From Zootoca vivipara (lineage: Eukaryota): a DNA stretch of 64,000 bases. Under the pieces are notes generated by a model, which was not told the origin of the DNA, did no database searches, and saw only the letters and a program-made list of their open reading frames with translations. A program made the position numbers and the translations under genes. The stretch is from assembly GCF_963506605.1 (NCBI RefSeq), contig NC_083279.1:71486001-71550000 (forward strand). The letters run 5' to 3'. Shown here in pieces: positions 23,501 to 55,240 of the stretch (its first letter is position 1; each line of letters begins with the position of its first letter).

Positions 23501-26500
23501 GCTTTTAGGATTTATTGAATTGGCAAAACTAACCGCAGTAATAAGATATTAAACAATCCAGAAACTAAGATCACAATGAAAATGATTTGAAAAATAGATG
23601 AGCAAACACTGTCTAAAGACAACATGCTGATATGTCTAGATTAAGTTGGTAAAGTTGATTCAGAAAACAAAATATTAGTTACATAACAATACTAAAGATG
23701 AGAGTTACAAATTGCAATATAAATAAAGAATATAATAAACATAAGAAATGACGGACACTGGTGGAGGGAAGTCATGTAGGTGTAACATATATGTTTGTTA
23801 CAGGTAGGTAGCCGTGTTGGTCTGAGTCGAAACAAAATAAAAAAATTCCTTCAGTAGCACCTTAAAGACCAACTAAGTTTTTATTTTGGTATGAGCTTTT
23901 GTGTGCATGCACACTTCATCAGTCTATCTGATGAAGTGTGCATGCACACGAAAACTCATACCAAAATAAAAACTTAGTTGGTCTTTAAGGTGCTACTGAA
24001 GGAATTTTTCTATATATGTTTGTATTTTTGTATTGTCGGTATTTGTATTGTCGGTATTTGGTTGTAGTTTTAATGTGTGTGCATTGTATATAATAACTTT
24101 TTTTTAAAAAAGGCTGCCCATTATGCAACGAGCCCTTGGACTGGGTTTCTCTGCCCCTGGAATAAACAAACAAATATTTTTTGTTGTTACATCTGAATGC
24201 AGCACTCTATGTGAACGCTCAGTCTGTATTGGGTGAGCTATCTTATGAGGGAAGATTGCAGAAAGCTTCCTTTTCGGTGCAGGAAGCTCATCTTACAGGC
24301 ATCTAGTAACAAGAAAAGCAAGGTGATGGGGGATAATAGGTTTGAATGTCCTCTTTCCCCCCATCAGATTGGCTGACTGTCGTCCTTATTGTCCTTGGCG
24401 GCCTCCTCCTCCTCATGCTGATAGGGGTGTGCTGGTGCCAGTGCTGCCCTCAGCATTGCTGCTGCCATGTGCGCTGTGCCTGCTGCCCAACTCGCTGCTG
24501 CTGCAATGAAAAAGGTAAATCGGAAAGCAGGGCGTCTGCCCCTTGCGTTTGTTCCCAGGGAAACAATAACAACAAAATAGGTGTATTGAACCAAAGTCTT
24601 TTTTGTGTACGCTTCAACGACAAGCGTACATCCTCTGTGGGATTTGGGGTGGTCATAGAGGGGGAATACTGCTCAGTTGGAAACCTGACTGCATGTTATC
24701 CAAAATGTACAGTCATACCTCGGTTTAAGTACGCCTCGGTTTGAGTATTTTCAGTTTAAGTACTCTGTGGACCTGTCTGGAACTGATTAATCTACTTTCC
24801 ATTACTTTCAATGGGAAAGTTTGCTTCAGGTTAAGTACGCTTCAGTTTAAGTACTCCACGGACCATCTGGAATGTATTAATCCACATTCCATTACATTCA
24901 ATAGGAAAGTTCGCTTCAGGTTAAGTACGCTTCAGGTTAAGTACAGACTTCCGGAACCAATTGTGTTTGTAAACCAAGGTACCACTGTACACAAATAGGA
25001 GGGCCTTCATAGTTTCCTCCAAGTAGTTCAAACTCATGTTTTATCCTCACACCAACCCTGTGAAGTAGATTAGAATAAGAGACCATGATTAGCCTAAGCC
25101 TAAAGTCACCCAGTGAGCTTCATGGCTGCGTCAGGTTTTGAACCCTGGTCTCCCAGGTCCCTGATATGAAATTCTAACCACTATGCCCCATCTCCATCCC
25201 TTTCTGCCATTTGTGTTTACTCTTTCAGCATGTATAAATGCTCTCTTCATGGAACATGCTGAAGTAGACCATAATTTTATGTTAAGGGCATTGTGTAGGA
25301 CAGAGTTTGCTAAACTATTGGGGCCCATGGACACATTTGTGAACCGGAGAAACAGTCACAAACATCTTGTGTATTTATTAAATTTATTGCCCACCTTTCA
25401 GCAGCACAACACACACACACACATAAATATAATGCAGACTATTCTATTGGCTACAATAGAATACTTCTTTTAAGCCTTATTTCAGCAGGGGGAGTGGAGT
25501 CTGTGGGCGCCAGGAAAGTCCTCTGCCGGGACTACATTGGCAAAGCCCCGGTGTGAAGGAATTCAGGATTGCACTTTTAATGTTAGAAAATTTAGTGTCT
25601 CCAGAGTAAATATCCGTCTGAAATCAAAACCACACATTTGGTGCAGACAGACTGTATTTTTTCATGCCATCCCAATCTTGGAGCGGTGCAAGATTCCAGG
25701 GGTTCCAGGCATTCTAAACCAAGCAAGGAGGAACCTCCCTGTCACTAATTTTGGCTTCCAATATTGCTATTCTATAAAATGGAGAGAGAGAAAAAGATCT
25801 CCAGAGTTCTTGAGTGTACCTGTATAACATTTATTGCTTTTTTTCTATCCTCTAGTGCTGGAACGACATCAGTTTATGAAACAGGCTCAACAACTTTTCC
25901 CATGGATGACACACCACTCCCAGTCATCTTCATATCAACTAAACCCGTTGTTACAGAGAGGTAGGGCTGCGTCTACAAGTCCCAAGGGAGTGAATATATT
26001 ACAGCAGTTTAATGACTTGGATGCTTGTGGTTTGGCTTGATGATGATGCCTCTCTCAGAGGTGAAAGAGCGTCAGTGGCTACCAACCCAGCTGCTCAGAG
26101 GTGGTGAGGGTCAGGGCTGAGTTTATTCGTTACACAGGCAAGTGGAAGCATGTAATCTAGTATCTGTAAAGACTTGGCATCTTGTTTCCCATAGTGACAA
26201 ACCAGTTGTTTTGGAGAAAGCCCAACAAATGTTTCTGGGAAATCCACAACCAGGGAGTGAAGAAGAGAAACCTCTCCCGTTGTTTTGGGGGGTGTTTCTT
26301 TTCTCGTCCATCTGCAAACCTTGAAGTTTCCCAGGCCTATTGGTTCCTCTCTTTTGTACATGAATGGAGCAGCTCTGGGCTCCATGAGGATCCACACTCA
26401 CAGAATTAGATTTCTACCGTGTTTCTCATATTATAAGACACGTCTTATATTTATTTTTTCCTAAAAAACACACACTATGGCTTATTTTCAAGGGGTGTCT

Positions 26501-26913: not shown

Positions 26914-29900
26914 CTTTTCTATCCTAGGCAAAATTTTAGAAACTGAGTTGCTTTTGTTTTCTAAACTTAAAATGCTCCAAACAATTACTGTTATTTATTA
27001 AATTTATATACAGCCCTTCACCCAAAGATCACAATGTAGCTTTTTCTCCTAAGGAAAGTCCTTGTTGATTCCTTTGCCTCCCATTTTTCTGCACTTTTTG
27101 AAGCTGTCTTTTTGGCAATTGGGTGATCAAAACAGGTACTTGCCAATGAGGTCACACCCACTGTATATGCATTTGGCGCAGACCAAGTTTAAACAAGTTG
27201 ATCTGCTGCTTCTACATCTAGTTTGAGTCTCTGTCTTAATGCTGAATTGGAAGTCTTTACTTCAGGTCAACGAAATCTGTGCCGCCACCGTCCCAGATGC
27301 TGTTGTCCTCCAGCTCCCATCAGCCCAAGCCAGCATGGCCACTGGTTAGGGATGATGGAAGCTTTGGTCAAGCAACATCTCAGAGGGACACAGTTTCCCA
27401 GTTCGTCTTGACCTGGCTTTTTCTCATGGCAGGTGTCTTTCTTCCCCCTCCCCACCTTCTGTTCCATAGATGTGTCTCTGCAGAGCAGTCAGCCACGGAT
27501 GCCTCCACTTACCCAGTTTCCCTCCAACAAGATCTTGGAGCAGCTTGAGTCTGAGGTTAGGAACCTCGGCGTTTCCCAGCCCGTGATACCTCCGCACCGC
27601 GTTGAGAGCAGTCGTCACCCTAGCATCCTCTCCTCTCTGGGCTCAGAGATCGTGGAACGCAGAGTGATCCAGCTGCCTCCCATCATTGAGCGTATCCCAT
27701 CCTCCCGCAGAACTAGTGGTTCGTCACGACCACGGCGGTCGACATACGCCTCGCGACCCCGGAGCCAGGCAAGTGACGACGAGAGGGAGAGGAGGAGGAG
27801 GCGCTTGTCTTTGGATGAAGAAGATGATTCCTACTCCAGTTACGACCAGGAACTCCGGAGCAGACCTAGAGACCGCAGAGTCGAGAGGCAGAGGGCTGGC
27901 AGCCATTATGACAGGTCTCGGAGTTCTAGGCCAGACTTATCTCCCATTTTGCATGGTAGGAACAGTTCCGACTCGTATCCTGAGGAGGATAGAAGGGAGC
28001 ATTCTGCACGGCATCCCTCTGACAGAAGGTATTCAGGGCAGCGGGCTTATCGACCTCTCAGTCAGAGGAGCAGGGACTCCGATCGCCAGGGCCGCCGCCG
28101 CCGCCATCGCAGCTGTTCTCCACCATCCCGCCGGGAGTCTTGGAGTTCATCTGATGAGTACGAGCGCTTCCAAGGGAACAGCAGGCGGCATCGCCGCCAG
28201 CGCCACTCTCCAGACTGGCCAGAGAAACCCCCTAGTTACCGCTCGGTAGAAATCGTCCCAGCCAAAGGCGACAAAGCCAGAAGCCTTGCGGAGCAGCAAT
28301 CGGTAAAATAAGTGTGACAAATATTATCTTTCACAATCTCATGGGTATGTAGCTTTGCACCCTGCTACAGGCTACTCTCTGGCGGAGGCTGAAGACAGGC
28401 ACCATACAGAAAGGGGGGGCATGTGCATTTGCACAGGGCTGCTTTCTAAAGCTTATGCCCCTGTTCAAAGACACATGAATAGGCTCAAGAGAAGCATGGT
28501 CAAGCTCATGGCTATTTCTGAGTGAGGCAAACCAGGCCCTGCTTGCCTCAAGCCTACAAACGCTTCTCCTTGCTCTGACAAGGGCTCAACAACTTACCAG
28601 GACTGGGGCATGGCAGTAAGTAAGAAAGGGAGTTAGTGGGGAGGTGCTCTGGGGTGGGGGCAGAGAAGCCATCAGACTGAGAACAGAAGGTGATGCACCT
28701 TTTATTTTAGGCCATTGAGGTGCTTTTTCTAGCTATTGGGTATGTGGGAGCATCCATTCTTGCCCAAGAGCAAATAACGAAACAAAGCACTCCATCCAAG
28801 AAGCTTCAGATTCTCTTCTTGGCCAGCATGGTGTTGCTTTTCTGGTTTGGGACATGATTTGAGTTCTAGTTTCTGCTTTGAGTTCCATGCCCGGGGGGGG
28901 GGGGGGGACTTGCTGGCTTTTTATTATTTTTCCAACCGGGCTGCCATTTCTGCATTGCCTCCTTCTGCTGCTGCCCCAACCCTCCCTGGTAAGTTGCTGG
29001 GCTCTTACAAAGAAGAGCATTTGCATGGAAGCACAGTTGTTGTTTTTGCAAGCGCTCACTTTGAGCACGTGCAAGAATGGAGCCCCTTTTAAGACAAATG
29101 GTAGGAAAGCCTTGCACATCTTTAGAAAGGAAGCTCTCCAGTGTTGTTTGTCTGCAGCATGCTAGTGAATCAAACATTGATATGGCCTGGCCCAGTTGAT
29201 GAGAGTCAAAACTGTACATGACTTGTCTCATGTAGTTCTCCGAAGAGAAAGGTAGTGGTAGTTGTGGTTTTCACAAGTGGGCAGGGGTAGGTGAAAATCT
29301 GGATTAGAAAACTAGCATTAGGGTCAGACCTGGATCAGATACCTTTCTACTGCTGGTCTGATCTGAGTCAGGGGCTCCACATTAGCATTTTCAACGGAAC
29401 CTTTTTATGCATTGCAAATTATACATGCAGGCAGCCCAAAGGTTTAAAGCCCCCACCTCCCACTCTAAGGCCCTAATCTGGATCAAGCCCTCACACCAAT
29501 TTATTTGTAAAAAAAACCCAAACTGTGCACACTCCAAAAACAAGACAAAATACCTTGCACACAGAGGTGGAGCTGTGAGACTGGCCTTAAAGCACCCAGC
29601 TGCAGTGGCGCTTCGTTTACCAGCTGAAGGAGGAGAAGACACCTGCCGTGAGACGAGAGGGGCAGGAATGGTAATTCCAGCTTGATTCACCAGTATCTGA
29701 TAGTTATTAATATCCAAAATTGCATTGCTGTGAACCACCCTTCTGTATTGCATCCATCTTCAACCAGAGGGAGCCTCATGAGTGCTATAGGCCCCACTGG
29801 CGGAGGAAGAGGAGTGCAGGGGGAGTGCAGCGCCCCCAGTAGCGCGATCCCAGTGGAGTGCCATCGTGGCTGTCTCCCGCCCGCGCTGGGTGGCATGCCA

Positions 29901-30316
29901 CGCCCCCAAGACACATGCCACATCCCCTCAGGTGGCGCGCCACGCCCCCGGGACGCGCGCCAGCCCTGCCGCCATCTGCTCTCCGCCCCCCCAGTGCCGG
30001 AGCATGAAGCTCCGCCACTGATCAGCCCCAAATAGCTTGTACAAAGGTTCGAAATTTTGGAGCTAATTAACAGCATCCATCGTTCAGATGAGCATCATTC
30101 AGATCAAGCGGTCTCAAATCAGACTGTGGTTGAGTTAGCTCAGTAGGGAAAGTATTGCTGTTTAACAGCCTGGAAGGGAGGGAGGGTAAGAATGAATTAT
30201 AAGTGACCTGTTGCACTGTCCCCCATTATGGCTGCTTACCAGCTGCTTACTAGCTTTTTTTTTTTTTCTTCTAGGAGAAAGGCAGTTCTCGCAGTGGAAG
30301 AAGTGTTGTCATTTAG
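17489..30316 (+). CDS. ILDR1: Immunoglobulin-like domain-containing receptor 1 (angulin-2), 8 exons, 543 aa
   Basis: Exons 17489-17552, 20447-20617, 22245-22394, 22958-23077, 24368-24514, 25856-25960, 27470-28302, 30275-30316 total 1632 nt with consistent phases. Signal peptide, Ig-V domain ([16 protein letters not shown]...[10 protein letters not shown]), TM helix, Cys-rich stretch, RS-rich tail with KPPSY, and C-terminal SGRSVVI as in ILDR1. Confidence 0.96.
18077..18440 (+). mobile_element. Sauria SINE
   Basis: tRNA-like head with B-box-like GGTTCGAATCC; ACCTTTACCTTT tail. Confidence 0.88.
20447..20617 (+). CDS. ILDR1: ILDR1 exon 2 (Ig domain start)
   Basis: 171 bp, TTGCAG/GTGAGT. Confidence 0.93.
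21808..22212 (-). mobile_element. Probable solo LTR in ILDR1 intron 2
   Basis: TGTTGG start on -, AATAAA on - near 21943, ATTT 4-bp flanks. Confidence 0.45.
22245..22394 (+). CDS. ILDR1: ILDR1 exon 3 ([21 protein letters not shown]...ITIQN)
   Basis: 150 bp, TTACAG/GTAAGA. Confidence 0.93.
22494..22812 (-). mobile_element. Sauria SINE
   Basis: Same core and tail as the other copies. Confidence 0.88.
22958..23077 (+). CDS. ILDR1: ILDR1 exon 4 ([18 protein letters not shown]...KLIVL)
   Basis: 120 bp, CATAG/GTACGT. Confidence 0.93.
23375..23790 (+). mobile_element. L1-type LINE 3' fragment
   Basis: [18 protein letters not shown]...[10 protein letters not shown] resembles the L1 ORF2 C-terminus; A-rich tail. 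Confidence 0.65.
23800..24009. mobile_element. Penelope-like inverted terminal pair (about 82-bp arms)
   Basis: 23841-23922 is the near-perfect reverse complement of 23928-24009. Confidence 0.7.
24368..24514 (+). CDS. ILDR1: ILDR1 exon 5 (TM and Cys-rich region)
   Basis: 147 bp, ATCAG/GTAAAT. Confidence 0.93.
24710..24987. mobile_element. Tc1/mariner (Tigger-like) MITE
   Basis: Termini CAGTCATACCTCGG...CCAAGGTACCACTG, TA TSD, internal duplication. Confidence 0.8.
25856..25960 (+). CDS. ILDR1: ILDR1 exon 6 ([11 protein letters not shown]...NPLLQR)
   Basis: 105 bp, TCTAG/GTAGGG. Confidence 0.9.
26417..26651. mobile_element. Tc1/mariner (Tc2-like) MITE
   Basis: TIRs CCGTGTTTCTCATATTATAAGAC / GTCTTAAAATATGAGAAACAGG, TA flanks. 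Confidence 0.75.
26834..26907. repeat. Compound (CA)n(GA)n microsatellite
   Basis: Direct observation. Confidence 0.95.
27470..28302 (+). CDS. ILDR1: ILDR1 exon 7 (RS-rich cytoplasmic domain)
   Basis: 833 bp, CATAG/GTAAAA, within ORF 27433..28311. Confidence 0.93.
30275..30316 (+). CDS. ILDR1: ILDR1 exon 8 ([13 protein letters not shown])
   Basis: Long poly-T acceptor CTTCTAG; PDZ-binding-type C-terminus; stop TAG. Confidence 0.92.
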   Translation, partial: EKGSSRSGRSVVI

Positions 30317-32084
30317 CATTTTCTTCCTGCTATTGTAAAAAAATGTCTGCAAATCAAAACAGTCATTAGCTGTTCAGTGTAGCAGCTACCAAGAGGAATC
30401 TGTTTCATCTCAACCACCTTCAGCCTGGATTTCCTCACCTTGGACACTGAAGCAGGAATGAGATGGAACTCCTTTTCAACAACATCTAGTTCCCGACAGT
30501 TGGCTTTTAAAAACATGCTTTGTACAGGAATAATTTGTACAAGAATAATTGCTAACTGCATACCCAATACATGTTGAAATTAACTGATTGCCAATGGCCT
30601 GACTCAGAGCCTGACGAAAGTAGCCTTGGATTGCATCAGACTTTGCAGTTTAATATTTACATGAACCAGTTACTGAATGAACTGTACAAAACAGCTCAGT
30701 TACTGAGCAATGTGAGCAAACAGAAATTAACCAATATAAACATTATGGGAATTTGGTATTGTAATTAAGGTAACTCACAAGTTATGTGCATTTAACTTAA
30801 ACACATTCAGCTTTACATGGTTGGCAGTTAAATAATAAAAATAATAAAAGGGGGGGCAGGTATCCAGGAAAAAAGATTTTGGCAATACCACAAGGAATTG
30901 AACCCAACACGTTTTGGCTATATGTGATTTTAGCTTTACACGCTATCCCCGGAACATAACCCCCGTGTAAGTTGAGAGTTGCCTGTACATTGATCACCAA
31001 TGTCCATTAGGACCTAAGGCCTGGTTCATAGATGCACTTTCATCACTTGATGGCCGACAGATGAACAGGCTCCCATTGACTTGTGTTCAAGGAGACTTGT
31101 GTGAGCCGTGAGACATTTTTGCTGGCCCAAGGCAGCCCTGCCAAATTCTTAGGATTTTCTTGTCCTGCTGCAGGCCCCCCGTTCCCCCATCTCGCAGCAT
31201 GCTAAACTGGCAATCTTCCACCCTCTCTGGAGTGCCTTAGGGAGGGAGAAGTAGAGGGGGAGCCAGGAGAGCTCCATTGTACCAGTGGTATCCCACTATT
31301 TCTCCTCTGGATCTATCCCATTGAGTTTGGCTCGAGGAAAAATGAAAATTCTGTTCTAGAGCCAGAGTGGTGCTGTGACTGCAGTGTTGGACTTAATACC
31401 ATGGATACCCAGGTTCAAATTGGCCCCAACACCTAAATCACCTTTGGCCACTCCCTTCCTCTCAGACTAACCCTTCTCACAGAGTTGTTCTAAGGACATA
31501 AGAGGTGTTATAACGTATGCTGCTCTGAGCTCCTTAGACGAAAGATGGGATACTAAAATATGTGTGGTATCATTCAACAACACAGGTTATATGACGTGGG
31601 GAACAGGCTCAAATCAAAGTAGATAAATGTGATTTTTAAAAAAAACACTTCCTAAGGAACCCTTCTTTGTAGAAGCTTCCTCTTTTCAGATGATATATAG
31701 CAGAATGAAGGCTGCCTATAGCAGATATTTGCAGATACCAGATCACACTCAAATGGAGACTGAAGGTTATCTATTGTGTAATCATTTGATTTTTTTATAT
31801 CACAGACAATTAATGTGCACCCATATAACTGGTGTGCCACGAAGTGTAAACAGTAGCTAACAAGAATATTCATTCTGTTTATCATTTAACTTCTGTAAAG
31901 TGCATTTACCTGTTTTCTGAAATGTAATTGCATCTTCTACACTGTACTAAATGTGAAATAGATTGTTAGAGGCTGTCAATTATATGTAGATTTAACGAGT
32001 CGGGGATTGGTACAATATGTGTATTTTCCTTTCCTGTTTTTAAAAATATATCCTGGTGTTTTGGAGGGTTTGGGGTTTGGGGGG

Positions 32085-32624
32085 GTATTAATACCACTGT
32101 ATTCTGCTCTGGTCAGACCTCACCTGGAGTACTGTGTCCAGTTCTGGGCACCACAGTTCAAGAAGGATACTGATAAGCTGGAACGTGTCCAGAGGAGGGC
32201 AACCAAAATGGTCAAAGGCCTGGAAACAATGCCTTATGAGGAACGGCTTAGGGAGCTGGGTATGTTTAGCCTGGAGAAGAGAAGATTAAGGGGTGATATG
32301 ATAGCCATGTTCAAATATATAAAAGGATGTCATATGGAAGAGGGTGAAAGGTTGTTTTCTGCTGCTTCAGAGAAACGGACACGGAGCAATGTATTCAAAC
32401 TACAAGAAAGAAGATTCCACCTAAACATTAGGAAGAACTTCCTGACAGTAAGAGCTGTTCGACAGTGGAATTTGCTGCCAAGGAGTGTGGTGGAGTCTCC
32501 TTCTTTGGAGGTCTTTAAGCGGAGGCTTGACAGCCATCTGTCAGGAATGCTTTGATGGTGTTTCCTGCTTAGCAGGGGGTTGGACTGGATGGCCCTTATG
32601 GTCTCTTCCACCTCTATGATTCTA
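32085..32624 (+). mobile_element. Young CR1 LINE 3' part
   Basis: Uninterrupted RT C-terminal frame (ORF 32007..32555), CTATGATTCTAT tail, near-identical to the 7140-7912 copy. Confidence 0.93.
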
Positions 32625-33351
32625 TTACACAATAGTTTTTTTGTTTTTTTCACTTGAGCCAGTGATAGGTCACCTCATGATATGTCTGGGCTTCTAGGAA
32701 AAAGGAACCAGATGACCAAAAGGGCCAGTGCTAGCACCTGGCAACTTGAAGCAGTTGTTGGGACCCCAGTGGCTGGCAGGCCTCCCCTATGCCTGCTATT
32801 TGTGTCTCTGAGCTACCATTTGGATTTTTATATTTTTAAGAAAGGAAATTTGAATTCCATTTAAGAGCTTTGATTTACAGTTAGGTGGGTGTTACTGATT
32901 TTTAAATGTCAAATAACAGCAAAAAGCACAACAACCCAAAAGGAATACAGGGTAATGACAAGAGAAATAAAAAAATCAGTTAAGTGTTTTACAGCAAATA
33001 TAAACTCATAGGGGCCGCCCTGCTTTTCACTGCACTTGCCATCCTCATATGGCCCTTTGCCAACCACTCTTCCCTCACACCTGATCAACCCCTTTCCCTT
33101 TACATTTTACTCATCCCCTCCCCTATTGCCCACAACTTCCCCAAGCCCCACTTGCTTTTAAAGGAGGGGAAAGTGGCATGCTGCAAAATGTATTTGGAGG
33201 GCCCCATCAGGCCCCCCAAACCTGGAATTAATGACCCCAGGAGTAAAGGGTTAACTAAAACCTTCTACCATGTGATTGATCAGATTGTTTTCCTTGGGAC
33301 TCCACACTTCCGTACCTATCTATTGCAAAAGAGCAGATGTGGAGCAAGTAG

Positions 33352-33439
33352 AGACCTATGACCCCTTAAATACATCTATATGACACCAGTGAGTCTGCTT
33401 GGGTTTCAGAGGTGACATCAGCTGCTGCCAGTAAGAAAG
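33352..33439 (+). promoter_or_regulatory. APOV1: APOV1 proximal promoter (DR1 element, TATA-like box) and short non-coding exon 1
   Basis: AGACCTATGACCC (GGGTCA-T-AGGTCT on -, a DR1) at 33352-33364; TATA-like TATATGA at 33377-33383; strong donor AAAG|GTAAGT after 33439; fits the 4-exon layout with non-coding exon 1 recalled for chicken apoVLDL-II. Confidence 0.6.
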
Positions 33440-33611
33440 GTAAGTGAAAAATGATCTCTCTCTGTGTGTGTGTGTATATATATAATGCAGATCAGTTAGG
33501 GGAGATATTGAGCATGATACATTTCAAGAAATTTGAATGTGGAGTGCACCATTTTGTACTGTTTTTCATTCAACAATATGTCTTGGGTGGGCTATGGGGG
33601 ATATTCTCCAG

Positions 33612-33819
33612 TACAGGGGACGTTTTCGAACATCTCGGCTGCCAAATGTTTCGGAAGCCGAACGCTGAAAACCCGGAAGTGAATGCTCCTGTTTTCAAAC
33701 ACACCTTGAAAGTCAAATGGCTTCCGAGGCTCACACCCCTTTGATGCTCAGTTTCCGAATGTTTTGGAAGTCGATTGGTCTTCCGGAACAGATTACGTTC
33801 GAAAACCGAGGTTCCACTG
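33612..33819. mobile_element. Tigger-like MITE fragment in APOV1 intron 1
   Basis: Right end CCGAGGTTCCACTG-TA; related to 56344-56593. Confidence 0.6.
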
Positions 33820-34244
33820 TATTTGTTACAATTCTGGTGCTAGTACAGTACATATAATAAGTACTGTACAGTACATACTTGGCCACTGATTTGTGATGCA
33901 TTTTGTTAGGCAGGTGATTTTATTACTGATTTCAGGCTGTTTGTCACCATGTTATTTTTTTTTTCTTTTAAAAGAAAAAATAATGATGGTATAGAAAAAT
34001 AATAACAAAAATAATAACAAGAACTTGCACAAATGGATCCTGTGAACAGGTGCAGCAAAAGGGAAAAAGCAAATCGAAATTTGTAGCCGATTTCAGCAGT
34101 GCTATGTGTATTTGATTATTAGTCTCTATTCAAATGTGGTGGTGGTGTTGCATTTTCCTTACCAAATACTAACAGAGTGCTTTCTTTGCAGCACTCTGTA
34201 GAACTGTTGCACCAGAGTCTTCTGATACGGTGACCTAGTAGATC

Positions 34245-34305
34245 ATGCTTCAATATAAAGCTTGGGCTGTCACTCTAATCCTTCTCCTTGCAAATACCCT
34301 TACTG
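34245..34305 (+). CDS. APOV1: APOV1 exon 2, signal peptide
   Basis: Branch point TACTAAC 34167-34173, acceptor TTTCTTTGCAG (exon from 34192), ATG 34245, donor G|GTAAGA. Confidence 0.88.
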
Positions 34306-36008
34306 GTAAGATCTAAAGTGTTTCGATCTGGCTTCAGATATGCTTTGCTTGTTGAATATGTGTGCACCCCAGCCCTCAATTAAAGTTGAGTCCTAGTATT
34401 AAGTGTGAAATGTGCAGGCTACTGTTATCACCATACCTGGTTATACTGTTGAACTAAACAGGAGCCAAAAAGTCATTGGAAAAGGGGTGATAATCTAGAG
34501 CAGGCACCCCCCAAACTGCGGCCCTCCAGATGTTTTGGCCTACAACTCCCATGATCCCTAGCTAAAAGGACCAGTGGCCGGGGAAGATGGGAATTGTAGT
34601 CCAAAACATCTGGAGGGCCGAAGTTTGGGGGTGCCTGATCTAGAGTTCTTAGTGTATTCTACAGCTCAAATAATTGCAAGTCAAATAATTGCAGCTCCAA
34701 ATACTCAACTGTCCTTAGACACAGGAGAGAGTATTTATTATTAAATCTGTCAAATTATTAATTACTTTAAAAATGTAGTTATTCATCTGATTGTTGTTGT
34801 TTAGTCGTTTACTCGTGTCCGACTCTTCGTGACCCCATGGACCATAGCACGCCAGGCACTCCTGTCTTCCACTGCCTCCCGCAGTTTGGTCAAACTCATA
34901 TTCGTAGCTTCGAGAACACTGTCCAACCATCTCGTCCTCTGTCGTCCCCTTCTCCTAGTGCCCTCCATCTTTCCCAACATCAAGGTCTTTTCCAGGGATT
35001 CTTCTCTTCTCATGAGGTGGCCAAAGTATTGGAGCCTCAGCTTCACGATCTGTCCTTCCAGTGAGCACTCAGGGCTGATTTCCTTAAGAATGGATAGGTT
35101 TGATCTTCTTGCAGTCCATGGGACTCTCAAGAGTCTCCTCCAGCACCATAATTCAAAAGCATCAATTCTTCGGCGATCAGCCTTCTTTATGGTCCAGCTC
35201 TCACTTCCATACATCACTACTGGGAAAACCATAGCTTTAACTATACGGACCTTTGTAGGCAAGGTGATGTCTCTGCTTTTTAAGATGCTGTCTAGGTTTG
35301 TCATTGCTTTTCTCCCAAGAAGCAGGCGTCTTTTAATTTCGTGACTGCTGTCACCATCTGCAGTGATCAAGGAGCCCAAGAAAGTAAAATCTCTCACTGC
35401 CTCCATTTCTTCCCCTTCTATTTGCCAGGAGGTGATGCGACCAGTGGCCATGATCTTGGTTTTTTTGATGTTGAGCTTCAGACCATATTTTGCACTCTCC
35501 TCTTTCACCCTCATTAAAAGGTTCTTTAATTCCTCCTCACTTTCTGCCGTCAAGGTTGTGTCATCTGCATATCTGAGGTTGTTGATTTTCACTATTCATC
35601 TGATAGGCTGATTAATTTAGGTACTGAAAGGGCCATGTTGCATTTCTTTTCATCAGATTTTGTGCATTTGATGAATGCTGTATCTTGCCATCCTATACAA
35701 GATGAAACCCTAGTCCCAGGGTTTTGCTTATGTGGAGGCTTTCTCACAGACTGACAGACACAGCCGATCGATTGGGGCAACTGGTTTGAGTACAATCTTT
35801 AACTCACAGTGAAAATGTTAGTGAATTGTGCCAGCTAATAAATTAAAGCTCATGGCTTTAATTTCTCACCCCACCCCACCCTACCCTTTGCTCAGAAACA
35901 AATTCTGCATAATAGCAGATTCAGAAGTGTGGTAGTGCAAGGGATCTATCAGTCCCCCTGCCTATGCTATTTACGGATCTTGATAATGCTGTGTAAACAT
36001 GTCTGTGT

Positions 36009-36047
<39 letters not shown>

Positions 36048-38071
36048 ATATCTGCCTTGCTTCTGAAGTTCTTAGAAATACTTGTATCCAGCTGGACACT
36101 TAATTACAGAAGAGAATTTAAATTCATTTTCCCCTCCCCTCCCCTCTCCAGAAGTTGACACTAAAGCCATCTCAAAGAGGCATGTCCAATATGATTTGAT
36201 GATCATACCTGACGCAATTGCATTTTATGCGTTCGATGCTGTGAACAAAGTATCTCCTAAAACTGCTGAGTTCTTGTATGGTGCTTTCCAGAATCCAATC
36301 ATCCTTGAGACGAGGTATGTACGGTGATGATGACACATTTCTGTCATTGGGGGCGGTGCTTCAATTGTGGAGGTTCAAGCTGCAGGAATGAGAGTATAGA
36401 CAGGGCAGTCTCGAGCAGGTCAGCCGCCCTGGCGCTGAGCACCCACCCTTGCCGTGCAGCACCCACCCTACCGGCCCCGTGCCACCAGGACTCTACCTAG
36501 AGCCGGCCCTGAGTATAGAAATAAACCAGCTTTACAGTGAAAATATGTACTTGGGATATATTTCTTCCCCACTAAAGTGTGGACAATGTGTTTGTACTGG
36601 ACTGGTTTACAAAAAAAATTGCTATGTGTGCGAACTTTTCTCTTTCAGCATTGCACTGCTTTTGGCTAAGGGTATTGGCAAACTCCAGTGGGCGGTATAA
36701 TCGGTAGCATATTGGCAGAGATGGGATTCACCCACAGCGTGTTTTGCCCATCCTGGGAGGCCAGGTACAACCTAGAACAGGCATCCCCAAACTTCGGCCC
36801 TCCAGATGTTTTGGACTACAATTCCCATCATCCCTGACCACTGGTCCTGTTAGCTAGGGATCATGGGAGTTGTAGGCCAAAACATCTGGAGGGCCGCAGT
36901 TTGGGGATGCCTGACCTAGAACCTGCAAAGCACTTGAAAGTAGGGACAAATTCAATTCAGTTTAAATTTAAAGCCAAACCTACCAAATCCACACTTTTGA
37001 GAACAGTGCAGTATGCAAACTGAAATGCTGCTAACCTTCAGATTTTCTATTTTGCAAAGCACTTCTCCAACCAACCAATGCCTACAAAAATGCGTATCTC
37101 AGGGGAAAGTGTGCCTAAGAATGAAGATATTAGTGAAAATAACATACAAAAAATGATCTGAAGAAGTGTGCATGCACATGAAAGCTCATACCAATAACAA
37201 ACTTAGTTGGTCTCTAAGGTGCTACTGGAAGAATTTATCATTATTATTATTTTACAAAATAATGTGTTGTATTAGGGGCAATTGCTTCTAAAAATGTGTG
37301 CATTAGTCAAAACTGCATATGAAAAATGTATGTGTTGGGATAAATTTTCACTAAATTGCTGGTGAATTTTCATTAGTTGTTTTTTAAAAATTGCTGCAGA
37401 AATGTGGAGAACTGAATTTAAGATTGGAAAAATGAGAAGTTGAGACAACTGCAGTTAGCAGGTCCTTCCATCCATACAAGAATGGGTTTCATATGAATGC
37501 CTGCTACCTACTCCCACCCCCACCCCGTCTTAAGGCTACTACCAGATGCAGACAAGGATGGCTCAAACAAGAGCCTCCTCCATTGCATTTTTTGTCATCC
37601 AGCCTGGTGAAGAGTTATAGTGAACATAAAAGCTTGTTGTGGCATTCTGGTTGGCTTAATAAAGGATAAGAGCTGTAGAATTTACTGGAAGCTCTGAAGA
37701 ACATGGATGGCCCTCTATAAACCGTCTGAGGGAGCAATATATTTTGGGAGGGTTCAGGTTGTGAAACTTCCACCCATGTCCAGCCTATATATGTGTGAAC
37801 CATAAGCCCTGCGTCGCAAAAATGCCACAAGCCTCCAGTGTCTTCCTCCCAAAGGAAACAGATTTAGGGTACACGGTGAACCCCTGGAATTCTCAACACT
37901 CAGAAAAATGGGGAAAGCATAAAAATAGCATCTCATCATTACAGGTTTCTATTTCCTTGCAGGAACTTCTTGATAAAGACAACAACTGAAATCAATCGAG
38001 CATTTCAACAACTGGTAGAAAATATACATGGTTTATGGACAAAGGAAGAAGCAGAACCAGCACAGCACTAG
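34245..38071 (+). CDS. APOV1: Apovitellenin-1 / apolipoprotein VLDL-II orthologue, 110 aa
   Basis: Coding exons 34245-34305, 36152-36314 and 37963-38071 (333 nt, phases 1 and 2) give MLQYKAWAVTLILLLANTLTEVDTKAISKRHVQYDLMIIPDAIAFYAFDAVNKVSPKTAEFLYGAFQNPIILETRNFLIKTTTEINRAFQQLVENIHGLWTKEEAEPAQH. Colinear with chicken apoVLDL-II as recalled (MVQYRAL..ILLL..EV..K..IPDA..Y..AVNKVSP..RNFLI..T..QL.E.I..L..TK). Confidence 0.92.
34501..34637. mobile_element. hAT-type MITE
   Basis: TIR CAGGCACCCCC; TSD ATCTAGAG (34493-34500, 34638-34645). Confidence 0.9.
34792..35592 (-). mobile_element. BovB (RTE clade) LINE, 5'-truncated, in APOV1 intron 2
   Basis: Uninterrupted 263-aa RT frame (INNLRYADDTTL...RRIDAFELWCWRRLLRVPW), (CAA)n tail, 12-bp TSD TATTCATCTGAT (34780-34791, 35593-35604). 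Confidence 0.95.
36011..36043. repeat. (CA)n microsatellite
   Basis: Direct observation. Confidence 0.95.
36152..36314 (+). CDS. APOV1: APOV1 exon 3
   Basis: Pyrimidine tract CCCCTCTCCAG, donor AG|GTATGT; IPDA and AVNKVSP motifs. Confidence 0.92.
36778..36913. mobile_element. hAT-type MITE
   Basis: TIR CAGGCATCCCCAAACT; TSD ACCTAGAA (36770-36777, 36914-36921). Confidence 0.9.
37154..37230 (+). mobile_element. Penelope-like terminal fragment with hammerhead-like motif
   Basis: CTGAAGAAGTGTGCATGCACATGAAAGCTCATACC...TTAGTTGGTCTCTAAGGTGCTACTGGA. Confidence 0.6.
37963..38071 (+). CDS. APOV1: APOV1 exon 4 coding part
   Basis: Acceptor TTTCCTTGCAG, NFLIK...; stop TAG at 38069-38071. Confidence 0.9.
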
Positions 38072-38149
38072 GACCTAAATGAATTTGTGGAGTGGCCTCT
38101 TCCTTGTATTCATCAGTGGATCATATTGTGCAGAGGGTTATTTTGGTAT

Positions 38150-38875
38150 AGTTTATTATTATTATTTCATTTTATAATGTGTATATAAAACAGATAACAA
38201 TTATAACAACCGACAAAAATTTAAAGATGAAAAACAAAACTATAAAATAGGCACGTGGAATGAGTAATTGGACATGAGTTAAAATAAAGTCCAAGTAAAG
38301 ACTATCAAATTTACCAGATCATTAAGTATAGTTTCAGATTTGCCAGGCTTGTGATGACGGTTATCTTGAAAATGATGGTTCCACTGTATATGTCATAAAG
38401 GAATGCCAAATCATATAAAAAGTGCCTGGAGGTTCTAGCCTCATCGAAATCTCAAATTATGCTTGGTTTTCTCCTTTATTCTAGGGTGAACAGTGCCAAG
38501 CGTCCAGTGTAAGATTTTGGGCTGCTTTCCACTGAATTGCAATTATTGTTTGTGCTGCCAAGATCATATATGACCAGTTCCTTTGACGATATATTTACAT
38601 TGGTATCATCGAAAAATATTCAGTCACATGACTTCCAGTGCCTCGCAAAGCATCAGAAGTCACGTCCAAGGCTTTGTGGGGCCTTGTAGGTGGAGTCTAA
38701 GGTCTCACAGGGCCTTGGACATGACTTCCGGGGTTCCCAGGCACCGCTGCGGAGCTCACAAGGTGATGTCATGGCTCAATGTGAGGCCAGGATGTCACAT
38801 TATATCGTAGACCACTGGGCACCCATAATCTGGGGCCTAAGTCGGCACCCCTGGATCCAGCAGAAGTCAAGCATG

Positions 38876-38933
<58 letters not shown>

Positions 38934-39835
38934 CAGCCTGCTTCCAACTTCTAACTTTTAGCTCACATAACCCAGCTCTCAATCCTGGCCTTTGTCTTTC
39001 TAAATACCAGCAAGTTGGGGGAGAGGGTCCCACCCATTTGTCGTCTCTCACAAAGCCACTTCCTTTGTTACCTTAATGATCCATACTTCAGCAATTACCT
39101 CATTAGGAAGTTAGCCTGGCTTTTCCAGGAATTGAAATTGGATCCAGGAATTTGAAAGGGGCTCAAGCATATAGACCATGTCTCGTAAACTCAGAACAGT
39201 ACAATTTAGAAACAAATCCTTTTCTCTCTATACCCATTGTGCTTAATAAATTGTGCTAAGGGTCTCAGAGCTTGTGTTTTTAGAAATTCTTTTATAATAA
39301 AACTATGAATTGATGAAAATAAATCCAGTTTGTGTTCAGATTTGACGAAGTTAACTTTATTTGGTTACTAGCTAGAGGTTGATTATTGGTATAGAAATCT
39401 TATAATGTGTATAAACTTTCAGATTTGCAGTATTCAAATTCCTTATCTCTCCTTTGCTGGAAAAAATATGGGTAATATGATATTGGAATTAATGGAAAAA
39501 CAATAGGTGCAAATTTAGGTTGCCAGGTTTTCCATATCTGAATAGTACAGTTAGTAAATGGATTTGATATAGAGTTCATTAGATCTGGTTTAAGATTCTC
39601 CTAGCAAGAGATGTTTATATAGTTTGATTTCCCAGTGTTTATTCGGTTCCTCTTTGATTATATATAATAACCGTCTCAGTTGAAATACAGAGTAGTAGAA
39701 ATATAAATTAGGTATACCCCATCCTTCAAACTGAGCTCTGCTAAATAAAAAGTATTGACTCAGTCTAGGTTTTTTCTTTTGCAAAATAAAATTTATTATT
39801 TTAAGTTGGTATGTTTTCTCATGCTGCCACCAGAG
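38150..39835 (-). mobile_element. Degraded, interrupted L1-type LINE
   Basis: ORF 39590..39850 (KKPRL...EGWGIPNLYFYY) resembles the post-RT L1 ORF2 motif; boundaries approximate. Confidence 0.5.
38879..38930. repeat. (CT)n microsatellite
   Basis: Direct observation. Confidence 0.95.
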
Positions 39836-42465
39836 GGAGGGAGTAGCCATTCTTCAGCAATGACAAGTTATGAAGCCTTCCCACAAGTCGACGATCATTT
39901 CGTGAATCATCGCAAGTAGCACAGCATATGTGTAACTCCGAACTGTTTGGAAGAAGAGTGTGCTTTTATAAATGAAGTAAATAAATTGAATGCCTCCACA
40001 TAATAAAATGTTATATATGACTCACAATTATTGGGAGCCACTAGATTCGGCAGAGAATTTAGCAGTTTCCATCATTTCCTGCAACAGCTTTCTTTGTGAA
40101 ATGTGCTGCATGGCTGTAGAAAAACCAAATTAATAACAGATACAATGTCACTTACATCTGTATACAGGGACCTATATTTTGGTCCTGTGGGGCAAACCCT
40201 CTTCTGGATACACAGCCCACAAATCAGTTAGAAATGTGATTGAAAATCTGCCTTGGGGAACTCTTCAGTGAAACGTTTCTTTAAGATTTCCTTAAACTCT
40301 TAAATGAGTTGCCTCAGGTGTGCTTTTTTGGTACTTGAAGGATTAATGCACAGTATTTTTGTTAGTTTAAAATCTGTGATGGATTCACCTTATAATCCAT
40401 TTGCATGAGTCACAGCATATTTCTTCAGCAGTAAAGGAAAAGGACAGTTTTGGGTAACTCCTTCTGATTTATTGTCATCAGTACAGCTACTGTATGAAAC
40501 AAGTGAATTTTACATTCAGCAGGTTAAGACAATTCAGTATAGGAAAGTTTTGGATATATTATTTTGCAAGAATGGTGCAAATGCTGGTCTGCGTCGGTCT
40601 TTGTGTGAGGAAACTGCATGTGGAAAGAGAGATTCACTGTTCTGATCCTTTTCAGATCCCAGGAAATTCTCACCATTATGAATGTGAACTGAACTATCCT
40701 GATCCATTTGTTTCATCAAGTACATCTTCATTACACCACGGGTTCAAGTTTTGCTCGCTTCATGGAGTGATATTCCTTCCTTTCTGTGTGTTATGTATTT
40801 GCTTTGATACGGGACTTCTGGGGAGGTATAGGAATGGCGGCATACATCAGGAAAGGAGGTCTATGACAGTTAGCAAGTCCCCTCCCCTTTTCAATTTTAA
40901 CTCTCCTGAAAATTAAAACTGAAATATGCCCCACCCTTTGCTACCTGTAAATGGGGTTGTGAAATGGGAGACAGGGAAGGTTTGGATCAGTCCTAGTATT
41001 AGACTGGGCTGTCTTCAAGACATCAAAAGAGTTTGAGGAATGTAGAGACACTCAGCAAATCTGACAGATCACTGCCAGAAACAGTTTTCTAGAATGGTGG
41101 TAGTGTCCACTGGGCCAGTTTCTTCAATGACAGGTGAATCTAGACCAGCAGGTGCATTCCTAATCTCACATTTGCCTGTGGAATGTTAGAGTAATACAGC
41201 CATCTTTGAATCTTGAAAGTTTTGAAGCAGCACAGATGACCGTAGCAATATTATTTTTAAATACTGCTTTTCAATGTACTGTTCACATGTAGTTCACTTG
41301 TTGTGATGAAAAGGAAAATATAGCACAAGAGGCTTCTCGCTAAAAAAAAATTCCTTGAAAACAGTTAGGGATAAAACCCAAAAAAAATTCTCAGTTTTTT
41401 TCCTTTTGGAAAGGGGTGTTTTTCCAGTGTTTATTATCATGTGGCATCACTAAGCTGCATCATGTACAGTAAGCCTTAGGAATTGGATCACTGCATACCT
41501 GACCCATTACATTGCCTTACCTTACCTCTTAAGAAAAGGTCACTCTCTAGTATTATTTGCAGTGTGGCAGTCAAAACACTCCACAAACAGGAATTGTCTA
41601 TACTGTGTACACACTTCCTTCAGAATATTGTACAGAAGTAACTACCTTGATTTAATCTGTCTTAGTTTTAAGAAGGACTGAATTATGATACACCATAAAG
41701 TATACGAAGACAGATTTCACAAATGGAGTAAGTAGTGTAGGGGAAAATACTGCACTGTATATATGTACTTAAAAAAACAACTTGTCTGTGGATTGGCATT
41801 TGCTATTTTAGACTTAGGATTTTCAGCTAATGTCCTTATTAAATGGCAAACTACGGTATGTTTCTCGGTGATAAACCAAACTCTGGCTGCCCTGTGGCTA
41901 CAACATTCAAGTTCACACATATGCAAATTTGCCCATAAATAGAATCCGATTTAGCAGGCTTCAGTTTGTGGTAGAAGATGTTCACCACATTCAAAAGGCA
42001 AAACATCAGTTACTTCCACTCTGACAGCAACATTGAGAGTTTTAATCTGTTTGTTTCACCAAGTTGTTTTCCCTAGTAACATATTTGACTGTTTAAAGAA
42101 GTGTGTGTAAAACCACTATTACCTGCCAAAAAGTAAGTACCGTTAGTTTTAATTGCTCAAAATATTTAGGTTTTGTGTATGTGTGTGCTGGAATGCTTTC
42201 TCAGCAATTAGTTTGAGCAATATCATTATCAAGATGAAGAGAAGTGACATGTCTACCATGTTTCCACAAACCATACCGTACATTAACCAAGAGCAACCAC
42301 ACATGGCATAAACATCAGGGAAGAACTTCATCAGTTTGGGAACCCATGATCTACATGTATTTTACCATCACTTATCTCTACCCTGTTTTACCCTACAAAT
42401 GAATGCTTAACAAGCTACAGGTTAAAATATAGGAAGCTACTTCATACCACATCAAACCATTAGTC

Positions 42466-48745: not shown

Positions 48746-49828
48746 TCAGAATGATACTGACCTCCTTCTCTTCCTAGAAACATCTTCCCGGTGGGCAAAT
48801 GCAGTCAAGGAGTAGCTAAGGCGAGTGTCTGAGCTTTCAGAACTGGTTCCAAAGTTGTTGGCCTTTGTGCACGGAGTTATACATTGCATCATTGCCCTAC
48901 GGATGTAGTCATCAAAGAAGTAGTAGATGAAAGGGTTCGTGCAGCTGTTGGCAAACGCAAATGGGCCACTCAGTTCCATACCAATATGGGCAACTTTGTA
49001 GGGAAGGCAGAAAGGTGGCTTCAGTTCCTGGATTGCAGACATCAGAGCTAGAAACTTAAAAATATTGAAAGGAGCCCATGAGAAAACAAAAATGATCACT
49101 ACAGTGAAGACAATTTTGATGGATTTCTTTAGCTTTTTATCATGTTTTCCAGATTTCTGATAATGCACACAGAGTTTCTTGGTGATGGAGCAATAAAAAG
49201 TCAAGATGATGAACAGAGGAACAAAGAATGCCAGAATTAGTAGCAGCACCGACCCAATCTGGTGAGTAGATGTGATTTCCTTGTCCACACAATATGTGCT
49301 GTTGTCGTATCTCCTCAGCTCTCTGGACAGAAGGGTAGGCAACCCAAGTAGGCAGGACAGAATCCAGACACAAGTGCAAAGGATGATGGAATACAGCTTT
49401 GTTCTGATTCTCCTAGCCACTGATGGGTACATGATTGCCAGGTACCGATCGCTACTCATGCAAGTGAGGAGAAAGATAGTGCAGTACATGTTGACTGAGA
49501 TGGTGTAGGAGCTGCCTTTGCAGAGAAAAGAGCCAGATCTCCAAAGTCCTGAGGTCCTCTCTTTGTCTACCCAAAAGGGTAATGTGATAAGGAATATAAA
49601 ATCAGACACTGCCAAGTTGACAATGAAGATATCAATTAGCCTCTGAATCCGCCGTTTGAAGATTAGCGCTCCTATTAGAAGGGCATTGCCAGCAATTCCC
49701 ACCAGGAATACAATGGTATAGAGAGCAGGCAGGAAAATGTGTTTGTAAGGCAACTCCACAGCTGAGCAGTTATCTTCAGGAAGATCTGTATAGAAATAGT
49801 AATCATAGCTAGAAGTTGATTTCTCCAT
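48746..49828 (-). CDS. GPR15: G protein-coupled receptor 15 (class A, chemokine-receptor-like), single coding exon, 360 aa
   Basis: 7 TM helices, DRY, NPFIY, Tyr-rich N-terminus (YDYYFY), RRLIDIFI-like ICL1, KHDKKLKKSIKI ICL3, C-terminal RRRSVSF; divergent neighbour of CLDND1 as in mammals. Confidence 0.96.
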   Translation of the reverse strand: MEKSTSSYDYYFYTDLPEDNCSAVELPYKHIFLPALYTIVFLVGIAGNALLIGALIFKRRIQRLIDIFIVNLAVSDFIFLITLPFWVDKERTSGLWRSGSFLCKGSSYTISVNMYCTIFLLTCMSSDRYLAIMYPSVARRIRTKLYSIILCTCVWILSCLLGLPTLLSRELRRYDNSTYCVDKEITSTHQIGSVLLLILAFFVPLFIILTFYCSITKKLCVHYQKSGKHDKKLKKSIKIVFTVVIIFVFSWAPFNIFKFLALMSAIQELKPPFCLPYKVAHIGMELSGPFAFANSCTNPFIYYFFDDYIRRAMMQCITPCTKANNFGTSSESSDTRLSYSLTAFAHREDVSRKRRRSVSF

Positions 49829-54771: not shown

Positions 54772-55240
54772 TTTCAAACAATCAAAATTCCTTATTTGGC
54801 ATTAAGGTTTATTAAAATGAATAGGGTTTATTTCCAAGTAAACATGTATTGAGTTAGACTGCCAGTTGAAAATATGTTCCATTTATTCTGTTTGTGCACA
54901 TGGGGATATTTTCTGAACATGAATCATGTGGAGGAAGTACTTTGAAAACTTAGGGTACACACACATAGGGCTTTACAGTGGTGAATGTGACCATTTCTGC
55001 CAAAAAACACAAAGCTGTTCTTGTTGGAATACAGTATATGTGTACTGCTGATTCATGTGCCACTTTTCCCACATAATAGGGGCCTGTTTTGAATTGATTA
55101 CAGTTCAAAACAATTCTTTCTACTGTGATTTAATTAAATATGTCCATTTGACTGACATTGGGTGAATGCCAGTTAGTAGTATAATTGCACAACTTTGATT
55201 TTCCTCTATCAGCATAAAATCTTAATGACAATCTCTATCT

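Follow-up and report, generated by a model that had tools for sequence, protein, structure and literature searches.

An intact apovitellenin-1 gene in the lizard Zootoca vivipara and its probable role in yolk-lipid delivery

Background

The chicken apolipoprotein apovitellenin-1, or apoVLDL-II (gene APOV1), dimerises through a cysteine, is encoded by a gene of four exons with an intron in the 5′ untranslated region (UTR), and is under the control of a promoter with two oestrogen response elements (EREs). With respect to its function, APOV1 of the hen is part of the shell of very low density lipoprotein (VLDL) as well as of the yolk, is expressed in laying liver 42-fold above juvenile liver, has been described as a 'potent lipase inhibitor' which guards the VLDL lipids en route to the follicle, and has no homologue in mammals (PMC6839265). 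An earlier note on the DNA described here, made from its letters alone, had likewise stated that there is no mammalian counterpart. The subject of the present analysis is a gene of the same family in a window of 64,000 nucleotides of the genome of the lizard Zootoca vivipara (contig NC_083279.1 of assembly GCF_963506605.1, positions 71,486,001 to 71,550,000 of the forward strand; no N in the entire 64 kb), and all coordinates given below are those of this window. The best explanation of the evidence overall, and a highly probable one, is that the window contains an intact apovitellenin-1 gene with a bird-like role in yolk VLDL.

Family assignment and prior annotation

Family searches were run for each exon separately, and the full-length Pfam search, the alignment, the tree and the fold prediction used the database protein P0016 (XP_060129724.1, "apovitellenin-1-like [Zootoca vivipara]"), which equals the exon translations piecewise: each exon peptide recurs in it letter for letter, at residues 1-20, 22-74 and 76-110, and the two codons split by introns agree with E21 and R75, so that all 110 residues are identical to the window protein. 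The exon 3 peptide by itself matches the Pfam family PF05418 (Apovitellenin I, Apo-VLDL-II) with E 6.5e-19 over profile positions 1-50 of 80, and the exon 4 peptide with E 2.8e-5 over positions 52-80 of 80, the split arginine being position 51. The comparison with the Apo-VLDL-II profile that the earlier note had proposed for its family assignment gave a full-length match, with E 2.4e-31 and 108.4 bits (cut-off 23.4) for P0016, of which residues 25-104 cover profile positions 1-80 of 80.

In addition, a word search with the open reading frame (ORF) around exon 3, scored on the exon 3 part alone, retrieved 13 proteins, 12 of them named; 11 of the 12 are called apovitellenin-1, and the twelfth is a 'hypothetical protein' of Gekko kuhli. 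The top matches come from Lacerta agilis (91% identity over the exon 3 region) and Podarcis lilfordi (85%), and the Podarcis protein cluster also contains two proteins of Z. vivipara, namely P0016 and an older RefSeq model, P0017 (XP_034972142.1). A second word search, with a turtle protein as query, extended the family to other turtles, to more squamates (snakes, iguanians, a worm lizard and a cordylid) and to tuatara, as well as to a newt and many birds. PF05418 is present in each of these matches, and wherever a match has a family name, this name is apovitellenin-1 or APOV1. There was no NCBIfam match, as expected of a bacterial and archaeal library, and no Rfam match within 30000-41000. 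That the window gene is the apovitellenin-1 (APOV1) orthologue, as judged both from its best matches and from the tree, can be regarded as virtually certain.

Since an identical protein of Z. vivipara is already in RefSeq, the gene itself is known and ordinary. The description of the gene as 'hidden' in the earlier note therefore holds for the ORF track only, and its caution that reptile homologues might already be annotated automatically was well placed, as RefSeq has apovitellenin-1 also in other lacertids, Anolis, snakes, geckos, tuatara, turtles, birds and a newt. With the gene model in RefSeq and the family annotated across reptiles, birds and at least one newt, the discovery value is small, and it is the functional side that remains.

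Gene structure

The gene consists of four exons, the first of which is non-coding (Table 1). The coding parts of exons 2 to 4 (61, 163 and 109 nt, the last including the TAG) together make up 110 codons plus TAG, with the split codons GAA (E; G+AA) and AGG (R; AG+G). The donors read AAG/GTAAGT, CTG/GTAAGA and GAG/GTATGT, every acceptor is a pyrimidine tract followed by CAG, and the introns run from GT to AG with fitting exon phases. The exon model of the earlier note, which had been built on the sizes of the three coding exons, strong splice signals and matching phases, is thus exact to the base, and the ORF track indeed shows the middle exon alone (listed ORF, 36082-36327). Translated separately, the exons yield a hydrophobic leader of 20 residues, 53 residues with IPDA and AVNKVSP, and 35 residues from NFLI; all three motifs singled out beforehand (IPDA, AVNKVSP and RNFLI) are therefore present, and with frame and splice sites unbroken the protein is the intact one of 110 amino acids with a signal peptide that had been predicted. 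The N-terminus has a hydrophobic core, and the PF05418 profile begins at K25; the signal peptide would accordingly comprise about 24 residues, cleavage after T24 being placed by the alignment only, and the predicted mature chain has 86 residues and no cysteine.

Table 1. Features of the apovitellenin-1 gene and its surroundings in the 64,000-nucleotide window
Feature	Position	Strand	Remarks
Exon 1, 5′ non-coding	33370-33439 (5′ end at or upstream of 33370; 33352 in the earlier note)	+	donor AAG/GTAAGT at 33439/33440
Exon 2	34192-34305	+	5′ UTR 34192-34244; coding 34245-34305: signal-peptide residues 1-20 and first base of codon 21
Exon 3	36152-36314	+	163 nt, phase 1 in, phase 2 out; end of predicted signal peptide and N-terminal two thirds of mature protein
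Exon 4, coding part	37963-38071	+	C-terminal amphipathic helix, begins (R)NFLI
3′ UTR	38072-38310	+	AATAAA at 38283-38288; 3′ end provisional
Variant sites	36160, 36188-36189, 36230, 36235, 37998	+	codons 24, 33, 47, 49, 87
LSR-domain exon (transmembrane and Cys-rich), ILDR/LSR-family upstream neighbour	24346-24520	+	PF05624 E 2.4e-25, profile 1-48 of 48
LINE reverse transcriptase fragment in intron 2, a repeat and no component of the gene	34801-35592	-	PF00078 RVT_1 E 5.4e-10
GPR15, single exon, downstream neighbour, 360-aa ORF	48746-49828	-	7tm_1 E 3.6e-55; PDB 8zqe GPR15 E 7.5e-134

The 5′ part of the gene can be compared with an older RefSeq model of Podarcis muralis (P0018, 150 aa), which starts at an upstream ATG and reads through the 5′ UTR. 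When translated, 33370-33438 matches residues 1-23 of this model with 78% identity (E 2e-10), 34194-34235 matches its residues 25-38, and the split codon G/CA corresponds to its A24; therefore, the junction 33439/34192 is common to the annotated transcript of P. muralis. In the frame of exon 1, the window has ATA where P0018 has ATG, and two tandem in-frame TAG codons (34236-34241) stand immediately 5′ of the ATG at 34245, so that the upstream frame is untranslated in the window.

By tblastn, limited to the window, the gene is present as a single copy, and a second gene copy there was rejected on this basis. A pseudogene was likewise rejected, in view of the undisturbed frame and splice sites and of the spliced contig.

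Transcription

The spliced contig stems from run X1, which carries the species label Zootoca vivipara; its library type is not on record, and it was taken as RNA. No run with the last exon is recorded as RNA. In contig record 1 of this run (587 nt), positions 13-218 align with 37961-38166, 219-380 with 36151-36312 and 381-492 with 34190-34304, i.e. exons 4, 3 and 2 are joined back to back and the pieces end at the exon borders of the window. The depth of X1 is 2-6 in exon bins and zero in unique intron bins, a pattern as expected from RNA. In this same-species run, taken as RNA, the coding exons are transcribed and spliced as predicted: of the three junctions put forward in the earlier note, 34305/36152 and 36314/37963 are joined in X1, and 33439/34192 is without X1 contig cover.

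Run X15 (DNA) covers the whole stretch evenly and shows no differences from the window, and may be the assembly's own sample; none of the junctions of the gene is among the joints listed for this run, which has 533 further joints beyond those listed.

Three further observations concern the ends of the transcript in X1. The 95 letters of record 1 that lie 5′ of exon 2 fail to place on 33300-33468, where X1 has no depth, which could be due to divergence above 5%, to an alternative first exon or to a chimeric contig end. The transcript is also three letters short at 34236-34241, most likely by the absence of one of the two TAG codons. At the other end, cover by a 280-nt contig (record 6) runs past the AATAAA, over 38224-38350 and beyond, and may reflect a 3′ UTR longer than predicted or another transcript.

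Sequence conservation, predicted fold and variation within the species

None of the nine columns that are invariant across the 27 aligned species is changed in the window protein, and in the tree the six lacertid sequences form one clade with a support of 100/100. The AlphaFold model, computed from the 27-sequence alignment, is a simple helical bundle and comprises a leader helix (residues 2-21) followed by helices at 35-54, 56-66 and 69-105, with a pLDDT of 70-80 over residues 41-100. The predicted helix 69-105 is amphipathic, with a hydrophobic moment (muH) of 0.35, which is equalled by 2% of shuffles, and of 0.63 for the best 18-mer.

Within Z. vivipara, the older model P0017 differs from P0016 at 5 of 110 residues (P0016 to P0017: T24A, Q33R, A47V, D49N and R87Q; Table 1), and T24, Q33 and A47 are found in the window allele only and in none of the other lacertids compared. 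The transcript of X1, in turn, encodes R33 and V47 (36188-9 AA>GT, 36230 C>T), has one synonymous change besides and is unaltered in coding exon 4, so that R87 is kept. Since P0016, P0017 and X1 (R33, V47, R87) all differ from each other, the protein haplotypes number three or more, a high figure for a gene of this length. Both Zootoca reference animals come from the Isle of Cumbrae, a Scottish island (PMC7643610, PMC13560796). The protein alleles of this species thus appear unusually divergent. A reading in which such haplotypes reflect diversifying or balancing selection, or else a loosened constraint, acting on a protein of yolk-lipid delivery in a lizard whose live-bearing is of recent origin, is one which we consider improbable.

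Proposed role in yolk formation and alternative explanations

By analogy with the bird orthologue, the liver of vitellogenic females would secrete an 86-residue, cysteine-free and all-helical apolipoprotein, processed from the precursor of 110 residues, which would bind via its amphipathic helices to the surface of triglyceride-rich VLDL and block lipoprotein lipase there, so that VLDL particles would reach the oocyte intact and be deposited as yolk. This chain from hepatic secretion via lipase shielding to yolk deposition is inferred for the lizard from the bird system. That the biochemical role is the same as in birds seems likely, and oestrogen-driven, liver-specific expression is somewhat favoured, both on the strength of the same analogy. 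Judging from the title of MacLachlan et al. 1996, as cited in PMC6839265, dimerisation through a disulphide is not essential for lipase inhibition; therefore, the missing cysteine is no obstacle in the lizard protein. Moreover, Z. vivipara is lecithotrophic, i.e. its embryos live on yolk even in the live-bearing lineages (PMC13560796; PMC13387830), and it is therefore to be expected that a gene for yolk-lipid delivery is kept.

A number of observations weigh against a bird-like role of an expressed gene. The assignment of X1 to RNA is a guess, though its intron-free contig supports it, and in two RNA runs of the species, X23 and X24 (raw reads, about 6% of each sampled), no reads fall on the coding exons, the tissue behind these runs evidently being one without expression of the gene. 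The stem of the lacertid clade is long, with 0.33 changes per column. In place of the motif RRDWL, which newt and birds alike have kept, the window allele has QYDLM, so that both R33, which is nearly invariant, and W36, which is conserved elsewhere, are replaced (residues 33-36 at 36187-36198); the counterparts are RNDWM in Podarcis, RHDLM in Lacerta and RYDLM in the older Zootoca model. The mean pLDDT of the AlphaFold model is a modest 66. As to regulation, no ERE with at most two mismatches to GGTCANNNTGACC was found within about 1.9 kb upstream; ERE-like sites with two mismatches number 19 in the window as against 22.8 expected by chance, the nearest upstream one lying at 31413, and the only site with one mismatch is at 54980, far from the promoter. 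ERE half-sites were discarded as too frequent to carry meaning. Finally, neither functional nor tissue data for a squamate apovitellenin, nor any study of apovitellenin in a lizard or snake, were found in the literature searched: the term 'apovitellenin' leads, in the 40 of 76 matches listed, to birds or hen eggs only, and it co-occurs with 'lizard' solely in a chicken study, and the search for APOV1 with lizard terms has no APOV1-containing paper among the matches listed. This is in line with the remark in the earlier note that the function has been studied mainly in birds.

Some of these observations would be explained if the gene were a true and expressed APOV1 orthologue whose role has drifted, or whose constraint has been relaxed, in lacertids or in Zootoca, so that the protein would no longer be an efficient lipase inhibitor on yolk VLDL. 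The long lacertid stem, the replacement of R33 and W36 in RRDW, the residues T24, Q33 and A47 that no other lacertid has and the five differences between the two RefSeq proteins of the same species all point in this direction. However, nothing disrupts the frame, the signal peptide or the splice sites, the nine invariant residues are retained, and Z. vivipara still provisions its embryos from yolk. The lacertid tips, in turn, are short (0.01-0.04), and since they follow a long stem, the protein changed early in the lacertid lineage and has stayed conserved from the lacertid radiation onwards. The change W36L is common to Lacerta agilis and Zootoca and hence not specific to Zootoca; according to PMC6053574, L. 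agilis lays eggs, and as this egg-laying species nevertheless has W36L, the replacement is not attributed here to live-bearing. A drifted role is thus given a low probability.

That the locus might instead be silent or decaying, with the spliced contig derived from a paralogue, a processed copy or another lineage, would fit the difference between the X1 contig and the window (about 2% of the placed letters), its 95 letters off exon 1 and the lack of X23 and X24 reads on the exons, but is hardly credible, as the window shows no frame break, lost splice site or second copy, the ends of the X1 pieces coincide with the borders of the window's exons, the DNA run X15 is even over the introns (depth about 25) with none of the junctions among the joints listed, and the X1 differences shift residues to the lacertid consensus (R33, V47), as those of an allele would.

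Neighbouring genes and repeats

Downstream of apovitellenin-1, the earlier note had placed GPR15, and the match to PDB 8zqe confirms it as the flanking gene on that side; the next-best match of the same ORF is AGTR1 (E 3.5e-50). The upstream neighbour encodes an LSR domain, and by its sequence would fit ILDR1, named in the earlier note, and equally ILDR2 or LSR; a protein atlas search with two ORFs on this side (27433-28308, and residues 1-58 of 24346-24741) yielded nothing usable. At the left edge of the window, a short ORF on the minus strand (559-795) weakly resembles WD40 (E about 5e-4, under the Pfam cut-off) and may belong to a WD-repeat gene as one of its exons.

Introns 2 and 3 harbour high-copy repeats (34483-35665 and 36680-37355) with very high depth in all runs, which reaches millions in the DNA run; these repeats are also abundant in the RNA runs, on both strands.

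Comparison with described apovitellenins

With respect to bird apovitellenin-1 (apoVLDL-II), the window protein belongs to the same family over the whole mature protein, the architecture being a signal peptide followed by about 82-86 residues, and the motifs IPDA, VNK(V/M)SP and RNFLI are common to both. The identity to five bird sequences is 42-46%. The differences lie in the C-terminus, which is an acidic tail ending in PAQH in the lizard and YTKVLGY in birds, in QYDLM of the lizard as compared to RRDWL of birds, and in the absence of a cysteine from the mature lizard protein as well as of an ERE near the lizard promoter, in contrast to the cysteine and the two EREs of the chicken system.

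In turn, the apovitellenin-1-like proteins of other squamates and reptiles (Lacerta agilis, Podarcis spp., Anolis carolinensis, snakes, geckos, tuatara and turtles) have 107-114 amino acids, the same Pfam domain and the same automatic name, and differ from the window protein by lineage-specific substitutions only. In comparison with RefSeq XP_060129724.1 of Zootoca vivipara, finally, there is no difference at the protein level, and the two are the same gene.

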